Virus record (IMG/VR): IMGVR_UViG_3300045971_000577
Span: 248,001 to 312,000 of that record
Reading direction: 5' to 3' (one strand)
Length of the DNA stretch: 64,000 bases
Under the pieces are notes generated by a model. That model did not search any database and had not been told where the DNA came from. It was given only the letters and a program-made list of their open reading frames with translations. A program made the position numbers and the translations under genes. This document shows positions 7,570 to 30,473 of this stretch, piece by piece (within the stretch, counting starts at the first letter, position 1; every line of letters starts with the position of its first letter).

Positions 7570-7644
7570 TGGTGCGTCTGGAGGGAATCGAACCCTCGTC
7601 ATAGGATTTAGAATCCCGTACTCTAACCGCTGAGCTACAAACGC
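7570..7644 (-). tRNA. Amber suppressor tRNA (anticodon CTA)
   Basis: GCGTTTG/CAGACGC acceptor, ACCA; anticodon arm CGGGA-TTCTAAA-TCCTA; anticodon at 7609-7611. Confidence 0.85.
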
Positions 7645-12952: not shown

Positions 12953-13203
12953 GTTTTCAAACTAACCTAAACGAACTGTTTGCATCCGGTAACCCATATG
13001 CGGTGGCAATAGCAGAGAAGATAAAGAATATCGACGATGCGTATGCTAATAAACTCATCACTGCGGATGAAGCTAAAGACCTTCTCAACGATATGAAAAC
13101 GGAAGAAGCATTAGTTGATCTTGCCAACAATTTGCAAATAAAACTCTATGTTCAGCAAACAATCGATAAGTTGATATTTCTTGTCGAGAATGTGATTTTT
13201 TAG
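12949..13203 (+). CDS. Hypothetical protein coupled to the lipoprotein
   Basis: ATGA overlap. Confidence 0.7.
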   Translation: MSFQTNLNELFASGNPYAVAIAEKIKNIDDAYANKLITADEAKDLLNDMKTEEALVDLANNLQIKLYVQQTIDKLIFLVENVIF

Positions 13204-13208
13204 TCATA

Positions 13209-13234
13209 AGAATAGGAACCGAAGTTCCTATTCT
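13209..13234. terminator. Hairpin terminator between convergent units
   Basis: Perfect 11-bp stem with a UUCG loop on the minus strand. Confidence 0.75.
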
Positions 13235-13500
13235 GGATTTTCTGTTGCCAGGCATTCCTGCCCCGTGGTTTACCGCTTTTTAGGCAGCAAGAGCCTCAGT
13301 GTAAAACGAATCATTTGCGTTTACTTTTTGTTTTCTTCGATTTACGGTCGTTGCTCACCGAGCGATAAGAAGCCTACTCAATACCCAGGCGATTCCGGAT
13401 CGGGCCCATAACTAAAACTTCACAAAAGGCTTAGTGGTGGACCCGGGGGGATTCGAACCCCCTTGTTGAATGTCTTTCTGTTTCCTACTTTACGCTGTTA
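13235..13500 (-). ncRNA. ssrA: Circularly permuted (two-piece) tmRNA
   Basis: Acceptor piece (T-arm, CGGGTCC-ACCA ending 13435) lies upstream of the 5' end GGGCCCG (13407); tag ANDSFYTEALAA* at 13280-13318; G3:U70; outer ends approximate. Confidence 0.85.
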
Positions 13501-13620
13501 TTTTCCTTAATTCTGATTCATAATAGTGTAGCAGACCTACAATAGTCATACGATCAAATCTGTTACCGTATCCTAAATGCCGTCTGTAGTAATCAATCTG
13601 TGATTCAATAAATGATTTAC

Positions 13621-23161: not shown

Positions 23162-23260
23162 ATTGTAACATTGAGATAGTTGAAGTAGTGTATGTGGAGT
23201 CGAACCAACCTTTAGTTCCCGGGTACACGATGCCCGCTTCAATCAGGCCTATCTCAAATA

Positions 23261-25490: not shown

Positions 25491-25514
25491 ATATTTTATT
25501 TTATTATCATTGTT

Positions 25515-25601
25515 TGGCTCCAAAGGTAGGGATCGAACCTACGAAGGCTTGCGCCATATCCCGTTAACAGCGGGGACCGTTACCACTCCGGCCACTTTGG
25601 A
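25515..25601 (-). tRNA. tRNA-Asn(GTT) with a long variable arm
   Basis: Loop CTGTTAA; GGC-GCAA-GCC arm; U1-A72, G73. Confidence 0.85.
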
Positions 25602-25624
25602 ATTGTTCATATAATTTGCATGTC

Positions 25625-25820
25625 TTTTAATTCTTTATGCATTAGAATTGTTAATTTTTTATCTGCAGGAAATTGATTCCATTTAGCAGTATCTTTTTCT
25701 GTTTTATATCCTTTGATCTCAATAAACTCATCTGTCCCTGGCAGATAGAAATCCGGAGTGATCTCGTGCAAATCCTTGATATACTTTTTTCATGGGTACC
25801 TTTCTGTGTTAGTGGACATT
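25625..25820 (-). pseudogene. Remnant of a PD-(D/E)xK endonuclease with an in-frame TGA
   Basis: RYP*KKY...TPDFYL...FIEIKGYKTE resembles 23305-23970; ends approximate. Confidence 0.6.
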
Positions 25821-25851
25821 GCTATTGTATATGTTTGCACGTCTTTGTCAA

Positions 25852-25972
25852 TGGCGTCGCCCCAGGGAATCGAACCCCGACTGCTCCTTTATGAGTGGAT
25901 TGAATTTTGTTGCTGAACGTATCCTTTACAGGATCACTTTCGTTTAGCATGCTACCGTTACATTAAAGCGAC
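25852..25972 (-). ncRNA. tRNA(CAT)-like RNA with a ~50-nt insert containing the TTCAGCAA motif
   Basis: GTCGCTT/GGGCGAC-GCCA acceptor; D- and T-arms; CTCATAA loop after the insert. Confidence 0.6.
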
Positions 25973-25976
25973 ATGA

Positions 25977-26135
25977 TGGAGTCATCCTTCTACTATATAC
26001 GGCTATAAGACCAGTTAGAGATAATAGGAGACGACATTGATTGGTGGACCCTTAAGGTGTATAGTGTAGTGACTTCTTAATGCCCATTGATTGGCGGTCT
26101 AGAGGAAATATATCTTAGGGATCTCTATCCGGACC
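25977..26135 (-). ncRNA. Array of three CCA-terminated acceptor-stem minihelices
   Basis: 26092-26135, 26042-26085 and 25977-26035, each preceded by an ATCAAT spacer. Confidence 0.65.
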
Positions 26136-26142
26136 ATTGATT

Positions 26143-26218
26143 TGGTGGGAGTACTGGGATTCGAACCCAGACCAGTCGGATTAAGAGTCCGCTATGCAAC
26201 CTGTAACACCTCACTCCC
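26143..26218 (-). tRNA. tRNA-Lys(CTT)
   Basis: Loop CTCTTAA. Confidence 0.92.
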
Positions 26219-26468
26219 GAATATTTTGTGGTCGATACTTATAGCGACCAATAATTGCAAGACATCCGATGTTGACTGCATAATTTAGCAGCAACGGATA
26301 GTCTTTCTTAGGGATAATATAGACTGCGGTAAGAACTTCTCCAGCAAACCATAACCCTAACATCCAGGACGAAATGCCCCGGGAATGCTTTTGTTTATAG
26401 GATTGTATTGCTTGTGGTACTGCACACAAGGCAAGCATCATACTTCCTATCCAGCCAATAATTTCCAT
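26211..26468 (-). CDS. PQ-loop / SemiSWEET-like membrane protein
   Basis: IIGWIG..LALCAVPQ, SRGISS; three hydrophobic helices. Confidence 0.8.
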   Translation of the reverse strand: MEIIGWIGSMMLALCAVPQAIQSYKQKHSRGISSWMLGLWFAGEVLTAVYIIPKKDYPLLLNYAVNIGCLAIIGRYKYRPQNIRE

Positions 26469-26481
26469 AGATACCTTTCGT

Positions 26482-26556
26482 TGGCATCCTGTACGAGAGT
26501 CGAACTCGTCTCCTCTGCTTGAAGGGCAGGTCACCTCACCCGAAGTGGAACAGGAC
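26482..26556 (-). tRNA. tRNA-Glu(TTC) with C33 (a shifted register would give TCA)
   Basis: CCTGC-CCTTCAA-GCAGA. Confidence 0.65.
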
Positions 26557-26669
26557 ATAAAATACTATCTGCAGGGGAGTCGAACGCGCCACCCACTGTA
26601 CCATAGATTGGTACGATACACCAGATACCGACCAAGCGACCAATCTCGCTTATGCACGGTTGCAGAACT

Positions 26670-26986: not shown

Positions 26987-27044
26987 AATAATAAATCAGT
27001 GTTCTTATTTTTCAATTAACAGTTGCAGAATAGATAAATATGTA

Positions 27045-27566
27045 ATGTTTAAACCTACCTGGCTATATGTAAAACAACACTCAAATACAAAATTATTGTA
27101 TTTTGGTAAAACCGTATCTAATCCTAACAAATATACCGGATCCGGTAAGGTATGGAAAAGACATTTAAAAATACATGGTAAAGAATATGTCCAAACTATA
27201 TGGTCAAAATTATTTACATCTAAAGATGAACTAAGTAATTTTGCAATAGCATTTTCCGAAATATTCGATATAGTTGAATCACCTATGTGGGCAAATCTTA
27301 TACCAGAGAATGGCATAGATGGCGGTGCACCAGGCAGAATTCAATCAATAGAAACAAAAAATAAAATAAGAAATTCTATCAACAATAGACCCAATTTTAA
27401 TCATCTAAAAGGTATTCCAAAATCGGATTCATTTAAAACAAATCACTCATTGTTAATGAAAAATAGGCCACAACTGCGATGCTGTTGTATATTATGCAGA
27501 CATGATATTTGCATAAACAAATTAGATGCACACCAAAACGGTAAACATTGTCTTACAAAAAATTAA
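27045..27566 (+). CDS. GIY-YIG-like homing endonuclease, antisense to the tRNA array
   Basis: PTWLYVKQH...LYFGKT...YTGSGKVW; GATAAATA upstream. Confidence 0.85.
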   Translation: MFKPTWLYVKQHSNTKLLYFGKTVSNPNKYTGSGKVWKRHLKIHGKEYVQTIWSKLFTSKDELSNFAIAFSEIFDIVESPMWANLIPENGIDGGAPGRIQSIETKNKIRNSINNRPNFNHLKGIPKSDSFKTNHSLLMKNRPQLRCCCILCRHDICINKLDAHQNGKHCLTKN

Positions 27567-27847: not shown

Positions 27848-28003
27848 AATAATTGGTGTCGACCTCAGGAATTCTAGTCGACGTGTGCAGCATTACTAAA
27901 ATAGCCACTATCCAAGAACTCCGTGAAAGGGAGGAGGTAGTATCTGCATGATGTAGTTGGAGAACTTCCATCTCCGCCCTCCTGCTTCCGCGGGGGCTTA
28001 TTC

Positions 28004-29819: not shown

Positions 29820-30473
29820 TCAATCTAAACCTAAACCTTTATTCCAGGGAGTTCTACCCTTCATCGCAACTCTTATCTTTTCTTTAGTTTCAGCAGACAT
29901 CGGCTGTCTTTTACGAGCCTTTGCTGCTTCACTTATTTTTCTGCAATGCTCATTTGCTAGTTTTCTGCCTGTATTGGCTTCACTTATCTTTTTACGAGTT
30001 TCTTCAGACGAACTGCGATTATTCGCTCTCATTCTTATCTTTGTGTCTTCCGACACAATCCTGCCGGTAAGTTTTGCACTTTTCTTTTGTTTTTCTTCTT
30101 CTGAAACAAATCGACCTGTGTTGGCTAAACTTATTTTCTTTCGAGATTCTGCCGAAAAAGCATGTCCTGGGCGCCCCTTGTCACTACCACCATCTATCCC
30201 ATTCTCAACTATCAGATTTGCCCATCTATCAGATTTTACAATATCAAACAAACTCGAAAACAACTCTGCAAATTCTATCAAATCATCACGATCGGTAAAT
30301 AACTCGCACCAAATAGTGTCTATATATGTTCCGTGCATTGCTAAATGGCTTTTCCAATACTTACCCGAACCATTATACCCGTCCAGGTTTGTCAACATCG
30401 ATTTACCAAAATATAACAAGCCGGTAACGCGATGCTTCTTTACATATAGCCAAGTTGGTCTAAACTCTCTCAT
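29820..30473 (-). CDS. GIY-YIG-like homing endonuclease with NUMOD3 repeats
   Basis: PTWLYVKKH...LYFGKS...YNGSGKYW; paralogue of 27045-27566. Confidence 0.88.
   Translation of the reverse strand: MREFRPTWLYVKKHRVTGLLYFGKSMLTNLDGYNGSGKYWKSHLAMHGTYIDTIWCELFTDRDDLIEFAELFSSLFDIVKSDRWANLIVENGIDGGSDKGRPGHAFSAESRKKISLANTGRFVSEEEKQKKSAKLTGRIVSEDTKIRMRANNRSSSEETRKKISEANTGRKLANEHCRKISEAAKARKRQPMSAETKEKIRVAMKGRTPWNKGLGLD

Follow-up and report, generated by a model that had tools for sequence, protein, structure and literature searches.

In bacteriophage T4, the gene for tRNA-Arg is followed by rnaD, which encodes species 2 RNA (119 nt, ending in CACCA), and by rnaC, which encodes species 1 RNA (139 nt, with a T arm), and the pair lies beside the homing endonuclease gene segB. 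Both RNAs are processed by RNase P, and neither is known to have a function. The tyrT locus of Escherichia coli has tandem repeats behind the tRNA gene, each containing a copy of the tRNA 3' end including the CCA, which are freed by processing (rtT RNA). In eukaryotes, mascRNA and the MEN-beta small RNA borrow RNase P, 3' processing and the CCA end for their biogenesis without serving translation. Theta ribozymes combine a nested double pseudoknot with a catalytic C and cut within 1 to 5 nt on either side of the 3' end of a tRNA that mostly lacks an encoded CCA (PMC10879173). The window analyzed here, a stretch of 64,000 nt (positions 248,001 to 312,000 of IMG/VR virus record IMGVR_UViG_3300045971_000577), carries on its minus strand three consecutive hairpins (units U1, U2 and U3), each ending in a discriminator base and CCA, between the gene for tRNA-Lys(CUU) and an unusual 121-nt tRNA-like gene (hereafter, the odd gene). 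As far as sequence comparison can tell, these units belong to a real, conserved and previously undescribed family of small RNAs that turns over rapidly within a phage tRNA operon, and whose mechanism is partly established. No description of genome-encoded arrays of CCA-tailed minihelices was found in the literature, and Rfam holds no matching family.

The hairpin array and its relatives

Read 5' to 3' along the minus strand, the array and its two anchors consist of the following features:

26143-26218, minus strand: tRNA-Lys(CTT) with encoded CCA, called by ARAGORN and by the Rfam tRNA model (49.4 bits); conserved upstream anchor
26136-26142, minus strand: spacer AATCAAT, read from the sequence, with U at position -1 before G+1 of U1
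26092-26135, minus strand: unit U1 (type 1), 44 nt, ends GGTC/GACC-G-CCA, defined by its fold
26086-26091, minus strand: spacer ATCAAT, read from the sequence
26042-26085, minus strand: unit U2 (type 2), 44 nt, ends GGGC/GTCC-A-CCA with a G3.U70 pair, defined by its fold
26036-26041, minus strand: spacer ATCAAT, read from the sequence
25977-26035, minus strand: unit U3 (type 3), 59 nt, ends GTCGTCT/GGATGAC-T-CCA, defined by its fold
25973-25976, minus strand: spacer TCAT, read from the sequence
25852-25972, minus strand: odd 121-nt tRNA-like gene with a G-CCA end; conserved downstream anchor

The unconstrained minimum-energy folds of U1, U2 and U3 are single hairpins without a D, anticodon or T arm, in which base 1 pairs with the base before the discriminator and exactly four nucleotides remain unpaired. 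U1 is composed of helices of 4, 3 and 5 bp, an internal loop CCC/U, a U-A/A-U clamp and the tip AGA, its apical module occupying 26110-26120. U2 has helices of 4, 5 and 2 bp, an internal loop CAC/U, the same clamp and the tip CAC (apical module 26061-26071), and U3 has two helices of 7 bp below a 24-nt apical part (25997-26020), the family module with a small extra hairpin in its tip. ARAGORN calls nothing within the units (25977-26135), and over the same interval Rfam reports no tRNA (RF00005), no HDV-like or other ribozyme and no other family at E≤10. A sequence-only reading of this DNA had proposed three hairpins behind tRNA-Lys with these coordinates, stems, N-CCA tails and ATCAAT spacers, as well as the lack of D, anticodon and T arms. 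The minus-strand sequence and the folds agree with the former, and ARAGORN, Rfam at that threshold and the folds with the latter.

A hairpin with a stem of at least 6 bp followed by NCCA occurs 426 times genome-wide on the strand of the array; thus, a single unit carries no weight by itself. A tiled chain of three units, defined by flush stems of at least 4 bp and gaps of at most 8 nt, is rarer: among 5000 dinucleotide shuffles, 12 contained one, as did 20 of 8682 windows of 170 nt from the genome. The decisive evidence that the array exceeds chance is comparative, drawn from related phages, together with this tiling. The array is not an assembly artifact: 25500-26289 recurs unchanged in contigs of another pond sample from another study (X2), with no polymorphism in the array. 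The sequence-only reading had listed a fourth candidate at 27854-27882 (minus strand), 6 nt before tRNA-Ala. The hairpin (7 bp, followed by ACCA) is real (z -2.35), but it lacks the loop motif of the family, has no counterpart upstream of tRNA-Ala in relatives and is not significant at the genomic chance rate; it was not retained.

A search with the capsid protein identified 286 related stretches in IMG/VR, and three complete relatives keep the order tRNA-Lys(CTT), one to three CCA-tailed hairpins, odd gene. Further loci were gathered from IMG/VR and JGI metagenomes by anchoring on the conserved core of the odd gene. Throughout 26 distinct related contigs, the tRNA upstream of the slot is tRNA-Lys(CTT). 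Tallied by reading, the slot is empty (9-12 nt) in four of these contigs and contains one unit in eight, two units in five, three in six and four in one; in the other two, it is occupied by an inserted endonuclease open reading frame (ORF). Of these inserted ORFs (L236:1165-1653 and L269:533-982), one encodes a PD-(D/E)XK endonuclease (2.8e-26) and one shows a weak HNH match with one unit beside it. The empty slot of contig L249 reads exactly CCA-ATCAAT-next gene, and ATCAAT is the leader before G+1 in several relatives as well. The order of unit types is shuffled: 1, 2, 3 in the window; 3, 2, 1 in relative G001; and type 1, a CCA-less type and type 3 in relative L248. Full tRNAs at the homologous positions, an outcome that would have told against the sequence-only reading, were found in no relative: these show family hairpins or an empty slot.

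The family is confined to this slot as far as the searches reached. No members were found elsewhere in this phage genome, and its other inter-tRNA gaps contain no CCA-tailed hairpins. A DNA search of the phage collection returned no similar array, and a loose scan of the collection for two ATCAAT-G repeats gave chance matches only. A covariance model of type 1 scores U1 at 72.8 bits and hits once in this genome; on five related genomes, this model, which is too specific, gave nothing convincing.

An alignment of 24 units of 40-46 nt separates nearly unconserved arms (48% mean column identity) from an invariant core, approximately R-T-C-N-C-T-A ... T-A-T-A-T. Rather than a plain 11-nt loop, this core forms a module: a U-A pair closes an asymmetric internal loop, in which C-N-C of the 5' strand faces a single U of the 3' strand, and above it lie a clamp of two pairs (U-A/A-U) and a tip. 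The tip is variable, with 3-6 nt or, in type 3, an inserted mini-hairpin that accounts for the greater length of U3. The clamp pairs U4-A10 and A5-U9 form in 24 of 24 sequences, with a swap from A-U to G-C in one relative (L233); the closing pairs below the clamp are paired in 83% of cases, with double changes, versus 12.5% in a control in which partners were shifted by one column. The C-N-C/U loop may resemble the C-loop motif of rRNA.

Two candidate roles of the loop were examined and rejected. The loop motif is not a phage promoter, as it shows neither genome-wide enrichment nor hairpin-flanked copies elsewhere in the genome. A 6-7-nt complementarity between the loop sequence ATCACT and AGTGAT in the insertion of the odd gene does not covary in relatives.

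Selection on the helix extends below the module. Family units are irregular hairpins of 38-63 nt in which the positions of bulges vary from unit to unit, and the helix from the end to the module measures 9-15 bp (median 11), with G.U pairs making up 14% of all pairs. When the module is set by alignment columns only, pairing between its flanks exceeds that of shuffled flanks in 24 of 29 units (no more than 5% of shuffles equally good; mean z -2.83). The sense flanks are also more stable than their antisense counterparts in 25 of 29 units, by a mean of 3.5 kcal/mol (Wilcoxon p=1.2e-5). This bias points to selection on an RNA of tRNA sense and speaks against a cruciform in the DNA, a palindrome bound by protein and an antisense transcript.

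Comparisons within types are consistent with these results. U3 has four homologs, and the apical 22-24 nt of type 3 hardly differ among five genomes, while the two stems underneath are rewritten yet paired: the outer stem reads GTCGTCT/GGATGAC in the window, GCCGTGTC/GACGTGGC in G001, GCCGATT/GATTGGC in L213 and ACCATTT/AAGTGGT in L250, and the inner stem reads CTATTAT/ATAGTAG versus CCGATAT/ATATCGG. These stem pairs were read by hand, MAFFT having misplaced the 3' gap of U3. U1 has five homologs, one of which (L223) changes G2-C to U-A and C5.A to C5-G. The absence of compensatory change, which the sequence-only reading had held to speak against function, does not apply: many such changes are seen across relatives.

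The ends of the units resemble those of tRNAs. By hand curation, N-CCA is flush with the helix in about 31 of 42 distinct units, versus an expectation of 1 in 64, and a CCA precedes the odd gene by 4-8 nt in 20 of 22 arrays. Unit borders and this CCA tally were curated manually, the automated outward extension of helices having run past unit borders. About one quarter of the units lack the CCA and have tails such as CCC, CCG and CTA (mostly one base off), TCTCA or TCTT; one subtype, GACCTT...AAGGTC, never carries CCA and always ends in TCTC or TCTT. Neither this loss of CCA nor the conserved apical module had been foreseen in the sequence-only reading. T occupies position -1 in all three window units and in 36 of 47 phage tRNAs. 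The discriminators A, T and G are about equally frequent across the family, with C found once, and they vary within a type (T, G, A, T and G among type 3 units; G or A among type 1 units). The units display a locus-specific, covarying RNA structure of the sense strand, with tRNA-like ends and a conserved apical module.

Proposed role and rival explanations

Two promoter-like sites bracket the array:

26988-27015, minus strand: sigma-70-like promoter TTGAAA-16-TATTAT, ahead of tRNA-Tyr; the polycistron containing the array probably starts here
25824-25851, minus strand: sigma-70-like promoter TTGACA-16-TACAAT, right after the CCA of the odd gene, 11 of 12 matches; end of the transcription unit

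TTGACA follows the CCA of the odd gene in many relatives as well. With these bracketing sites and no terminator-like sites between them on the minus strand, the array would most simply be part of a polycistronic tRNA transcript. No other gene of the tRNA transcription unit lies between the array with the odd gene and the next promoter, which places both at the distal end of the unit.

With somewhat better than even confidence, we regard the units as small structured RNA genes of one lineage-specific family within the tRNA operon, which undergo tRNA-type processing and mimic a tRNA end. They would share a transcript, started at a sigma-70-type promoter, with tRNA-Lys(CUU) and the odd gene, and host tRNA maturation enzymes would free them as RNAs of 44-59 nt. 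The minimal substrate of bacterial RNase P is a flush helix with N-CCA and U(-1), and an encoded CCA stops 3' trimming. Acceptor minihelices were reportedly accepted by RNase P in the work of McClain, Guerrier-Takada and Altman in 1987, and by several synthetases in that of Francklyn and Schimmel in 1989. Because a flush helix with N-CCA constitutes such a minimal substrate, RNase P is expected to cut the units between U(-1) and G(+1), and trimming from the 3' side would halt at the encoded CCA. The acceptor-like end would then provide a handle for processing and stability while generically mimicking a tRNA 3' end, and the apical module would be the specific part, binding a partner. Lying about 11-12 bp from the 5' end, roughly as far as the T loop in a tRNA (7+5 bp), the module may stand in for the tRNA elbow.

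The weakest step of this scheme concerns what the mimic would do: during infection, it may sponge or misdirect a factor that acts on acceptor ends, such as a defense toxin or a processing or repair enzyme. An arms race of this type would underlie the turnover of copy number, order and stem sequence. A decoy or sponge is favored because acceptor sequence and discriminator vary while the structure of the end is kept, because turnover takes place in an endonuclease-rich hot spot and because tRNA 3' ends are a known antiphage target. By analogy with such systems, a decoy role in tRNA-centered conflict between phage and host is plausible. The toxSAS enzyme FaRel2 efficiently pyrophosphorylates a synthetic tRNA-Gly minihelix, reading positions 1:72, 2:71, 4:69 and 5:68 (doi 10.1101/2024.07.05.602228). 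MenT-type nucleotidyltransferases act on acceptor stems (PMC7450476); collateral cleavage of tRNA tails by Cas13 leads to a CCA signal (doi 10.64898/2026.08.25.746378); and SegB-driven amplification of the tRNA region of phage T6 overcomes a tRNA-cleaving defense (PMC13096335).

A bolder proposal, which we consider possible but doubtful, is that the units form a class of counter-defense RNAs: genome-encoded CCA-minihelix decoys, mass-produced via tRNA processing, that titrate defense enzymes acting on the acceptor end. Potential targets would be toxSAS pyrophosphokinases, AbiEii/MenT-type nucleotidyltransferases, GNAT acetylases and CCA-clipping nucleases. The C-N-C/U module would replace the elbow so that the decoy passes as a tRNA, and stems and copy number would be reshuffled with host specificity.

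Several observations count against the interpretation of the units as processed RNAs that mimic a tRNA end. Transcription, processing and stability of the units are all inferred. Taken singly, U1 and U2 fold no better than shuffled sequence (z-scores of -0.78 and -0.50 against shuffles, with -1.92 for U3). The units are dispensable, since four relatives have an empty slot, and, with about a quarter of the members devoid of CCA, either the CCA is not indispensable or these copies are decaying. As the sequences are related, part of the apparent covariation may be inherited and not independent. A pure acceptor-end decoy would not need a conserved apical module, and sequences of the phage genome that could pair with the loops were 9-11-mers no more frequent than expected by chance, with no partner found.

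It is unlikely, although compatible with several features of the locus, that the hairpins are cis-acting processing punctuation, that is, spacers through which RNase P and 3' nucleases gain clean access and which prevent misfolding between tRNA-Lys and the unusually long odd tRNA, the released pieces being by-products. Such spacers would fit the constant location of the units between one pair of genes, their RNase-P-like ends with U(-1) and the failure to find a target of the loop. However, four relatives join the two genes by 9-12 nt only and eight make do with one unit, and no other tRNA junction of the genome has such hairpins. Punctuation also leaves unexplained the conserved apical internal loop and the occurrence of up to four different units in a row.

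We consider it decidedly unlikely that the units are debris, either decaying remnants of tRNA genes or duplications of 3' ends generated by endonuclease-driven recombination, comparable to the tyrT repeats of E. coli. Features that might be expected of debris are the variable number and order of the units, the endonuclease ORFs inserted at this junction, acceptor ends like those of real phage tRNAs, the lack of CCA in about one quarter of the units and the empty slot of four relatives. Against this, the units bear no trace of a D, anticodon or T arm even at E≤10, whereas a tRNA pseudogene should keep some likeness to these arms and show no constraint on pairing. Their stems are rewritten yet paired, the length of the helix is constrained, selection acts on the sense strand with G.U pairs included, and the apical module is not tRNA-like. 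The suggestion in the sequence-only reading that the units reflect function and not decay is upheld by the pairing kept in rewritten stems and by the selection on the transcribed strand.

Amino-acid-specific roles were weighed through the identity elements of the units. The sequence-only reading had described an alanine-like end in U2 and a likeness of U3 to tRNA-Cys, and both descriptions are accurate: U2 agrees with each of the three tRNA-Ala genes of the phage at G1-C72, G2-C71, G3.U70, C4-G69 and A73, and U3 has three pairs and U73 in common with tRNA-Cys. Many units of relatives combine G1-C72, C2-G71 and U73, as does the phage tRNA-Gly. The units might therefore be minihelices that host synthetases charge (U2 by AlaRS, U3 by CysRS and the Gly-like units by GlyRS) and that act as amino-acid donors for a transferase or as sinks that disturb charging or EF-Tu. 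AlaRS does charge minihelices, U2 has the G3.U70, G2-C71 and A73 set of all three phage tRNA-Ala ends and is a predicted AlaRS substrate, and Gly-like ends recur in many relatives. As a conserved role, however, amino-acid-specific mimicry did not survive the comparison, because relatives alter acceptor pairs and discriminator within unit types, and the closest homolog of U2 (in L218) keeps the GGGC/GTCC end and has the tail CCG. With no linked transferase gene and a conserved module far from the acceptor end, aminoacylation is a very improbable function of the family.

Even less credit can be given to elements acting at the DNA level, such as promoters, target or insertion sites of endonucleases, or cruciforms, for which the RNA fold would be incidental. 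The loops do contain TATAT-like hexamers, and the junction is an insertion hot spot, but the inverted repeats keep their pairing and not their sequence, and, through G.U pairs, sense stability exceeds antisense stability in 25 of 29 units, a bias not expected of an element in duplex DNA. The hexamers have no -35 partner at the right distance, and the motif is not a genome-wide promoter signal.

Finally, the location directly behind a phage tRNA and the tandem units of about 50 nt could suggest self-cleaving theta/HDV-like ribozymes for trimming of the tRNA ahead of them, or a type III antitoxin RNA with its repeats. Both are extremely improbable, because the units are simple hairpins without a double pseudoknot or family match at E≤10, set off by a 6-7-nt spacer and an encoded CCA, and because the repeats of ToxI-like arrays are near-identical, whereas the phage units have nothing beyond the apical module in common and no adjacent toxin gene.

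Genomic setting and neighboring tRNA-like genes

The viral contig that contains the window is 369,145 bp long in its IMG/VR record, with direct terminal repeats and 45% G+C. The phage DNA is present in pond metagenomes from two samples and studies. Its head and tail genes include a T4-type major head protein and a tail sheath, and by capsid (78% identity) the nearest cultured relative is the Pseudomonas jumbo phage PA5oct. PA5oct has 12 tRNAs, but no tRNA-Lys and no odd gene, and its spacers are only AT-rich.

ARAGORN identifies 47 tRNA genes and a permuted transfer-messenger RNA (tmRNA), all on the minus strand of the phage. CCA is encoded in every phage tRNA gene, and the genome encodes neither a CCA-adding enzyme nor a peptidyl-tRNA hydrolase. 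The tmRNA is a permuted two-piece molecule at 13189-13535 (minus strand) with the tag ANDSFYTEALAA. A tRNA at 7570-7644 (minus strand), labeled Pyl by ARAGORN, has the amber-reading anticodon CTA; no sign of recoding was seen in the ORFs read, under translation table 11 only.

In the odd gene (25852-25972), the acceptor stem and D arm are followed by an anticodon-like arm, in which U33 and A37 are retained, and by a T arm and the G-CCA end. An insertion of about 45 nt separates the D and anticodon arms and contains a conserved ATCCT-GNNA-AGGAT hairpin. Neither ARAGORN nor Rfam calls the gene. It has 29 distinct homologs with an N-CCA end and covarying acceptor and D stems, and some contigs carry two in tandem. 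The anticodon triplet varies among relatives (CAT, GAT, TCT, CAG, GAC, TCC, TAC, CAC and GTC). The odd gene may represent a family of intron-bearing or expanded tRNAs.

Another tRNA-like gene missed by both finders lies at about 26467-26545 (minus strand) and is also present in relative L218. Its acceptor stem reads GTCCTGT/ACAGGAT-G-CCA, its T arm is normal, a CAC-TTCGG-GTG hairpin takes the place of the D arm, and the anticodon-like loop is CCTTCAA. A further stretch of odd structure lies at about 26560-26660. A non-coding element with two hairpins, GCGGAAGCAGG ... GGAGATG.AAGTTCTCC, is located between tRNA-Tyr and tRNA-Ala at about 27900-28003 (minus strand) and is conserved in at least six relatives. 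T-arm-like GGTTCGA sequences without a full cloverleaf occur at 23162-23260 (minus strand) and, in relative L220, in the gap between tRNA-Ser and the odd gene; these gaps are probably tRNA remnants or further non-canonical tRNA-like genes. This phage clade thus carries several tRNA-like genes that standard finders miss.

An 84-aa PQ-loop (SemiSWEET-like) membrane protein is encoded within the tRNA operon at 26211-26465 (minus strand; Pfam PF04193, 4.7e-12), just upstream of tRNA-Lys. ORFs of homing-endonuclease type are dispersed in the tRNA cluster at 27045-27566 (plus strand) and 29820-30473 (minus strand), the matches being a weak GIY-YIG with a PHROG homing-endonuclease hit, and NUMOD3.

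Comparison with known systems

Phage tRNA clusters are battlegrounds of anticodon nucleases, CCA-modifying toxins and endonuclease-driven amplification. The family described here offers a minimal case in this setting: a tRNA end without a tRNA body, with a defined module and with natural variants that differ in presence or absence and in loss of the CCA. If the units do prove to be decoys, they would be the first RNA-level countermeasure against acceptor-end toxins; if not, they would still define a new family of structured RNAs.

The likeness to mascRNA and the MEN-beta RNA is remote: these are eukaryotic, cloverleaf-like and derived from long non-coding RNAs, and have no homology to the units. 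The corresponding Rfam model gives only weak matches in the window, all of them on its true tRNAs. Theta ribozymes, which are linked to the formation of tRNA ends, share with the units the position of a small structured RNA immediately 3' of a phage tRNA (PMC10879173). They adjoin tRNAs devoid of CCA to within 1 nt on either side, whereas the units are plain hairpins placed behind a CCA and a spacer. The repeats behind tyrT are near-identical duplications of 178 bp, whereas the phage units covary, diverge in sequence and have nothing but a structural module in common.

In architecture, the units come close to the acceptor-TψC minihelices used as laboratory substrates of RNase P, AlaRS and other synthetases, the CCA-adding enzyme and FaRel2: about 12 bp of helix, flush at the 5' end, carry an unpaired N-CCA, and U2 adds the alanine identity set. 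The laboratory minihelices are constructs derived from real tRNAs and keep a 7-nt T loop (TTCRANN), whereas the units are encoded in a genome and consist of irregular helices with the C-N-C/U loop, clamp and tip in place of the T loop. At this locus, real T loops occur only in the genes neighboring the units.

The nearest natural analog of the array is the T4 pair of small stable RNAs. The two systems differ in detail: blastn-short finds only a match to the T arm of the odd gene, the folds differ and the T4 RNAs are not flush minihelices. Species 1 and 2 are not known to show a tandem array, a C-N-C/U module or turnover in copy number. Nevertheless, the T4 layout parallels the succession of tRNA-Lys, units and odd gene, rnaC, with its T arm and a length of about 139 nt, being the counterpart of the 121-nt odd gene, and in both phages non-tRNA genes are found at the distal end of the tRNA cluster.

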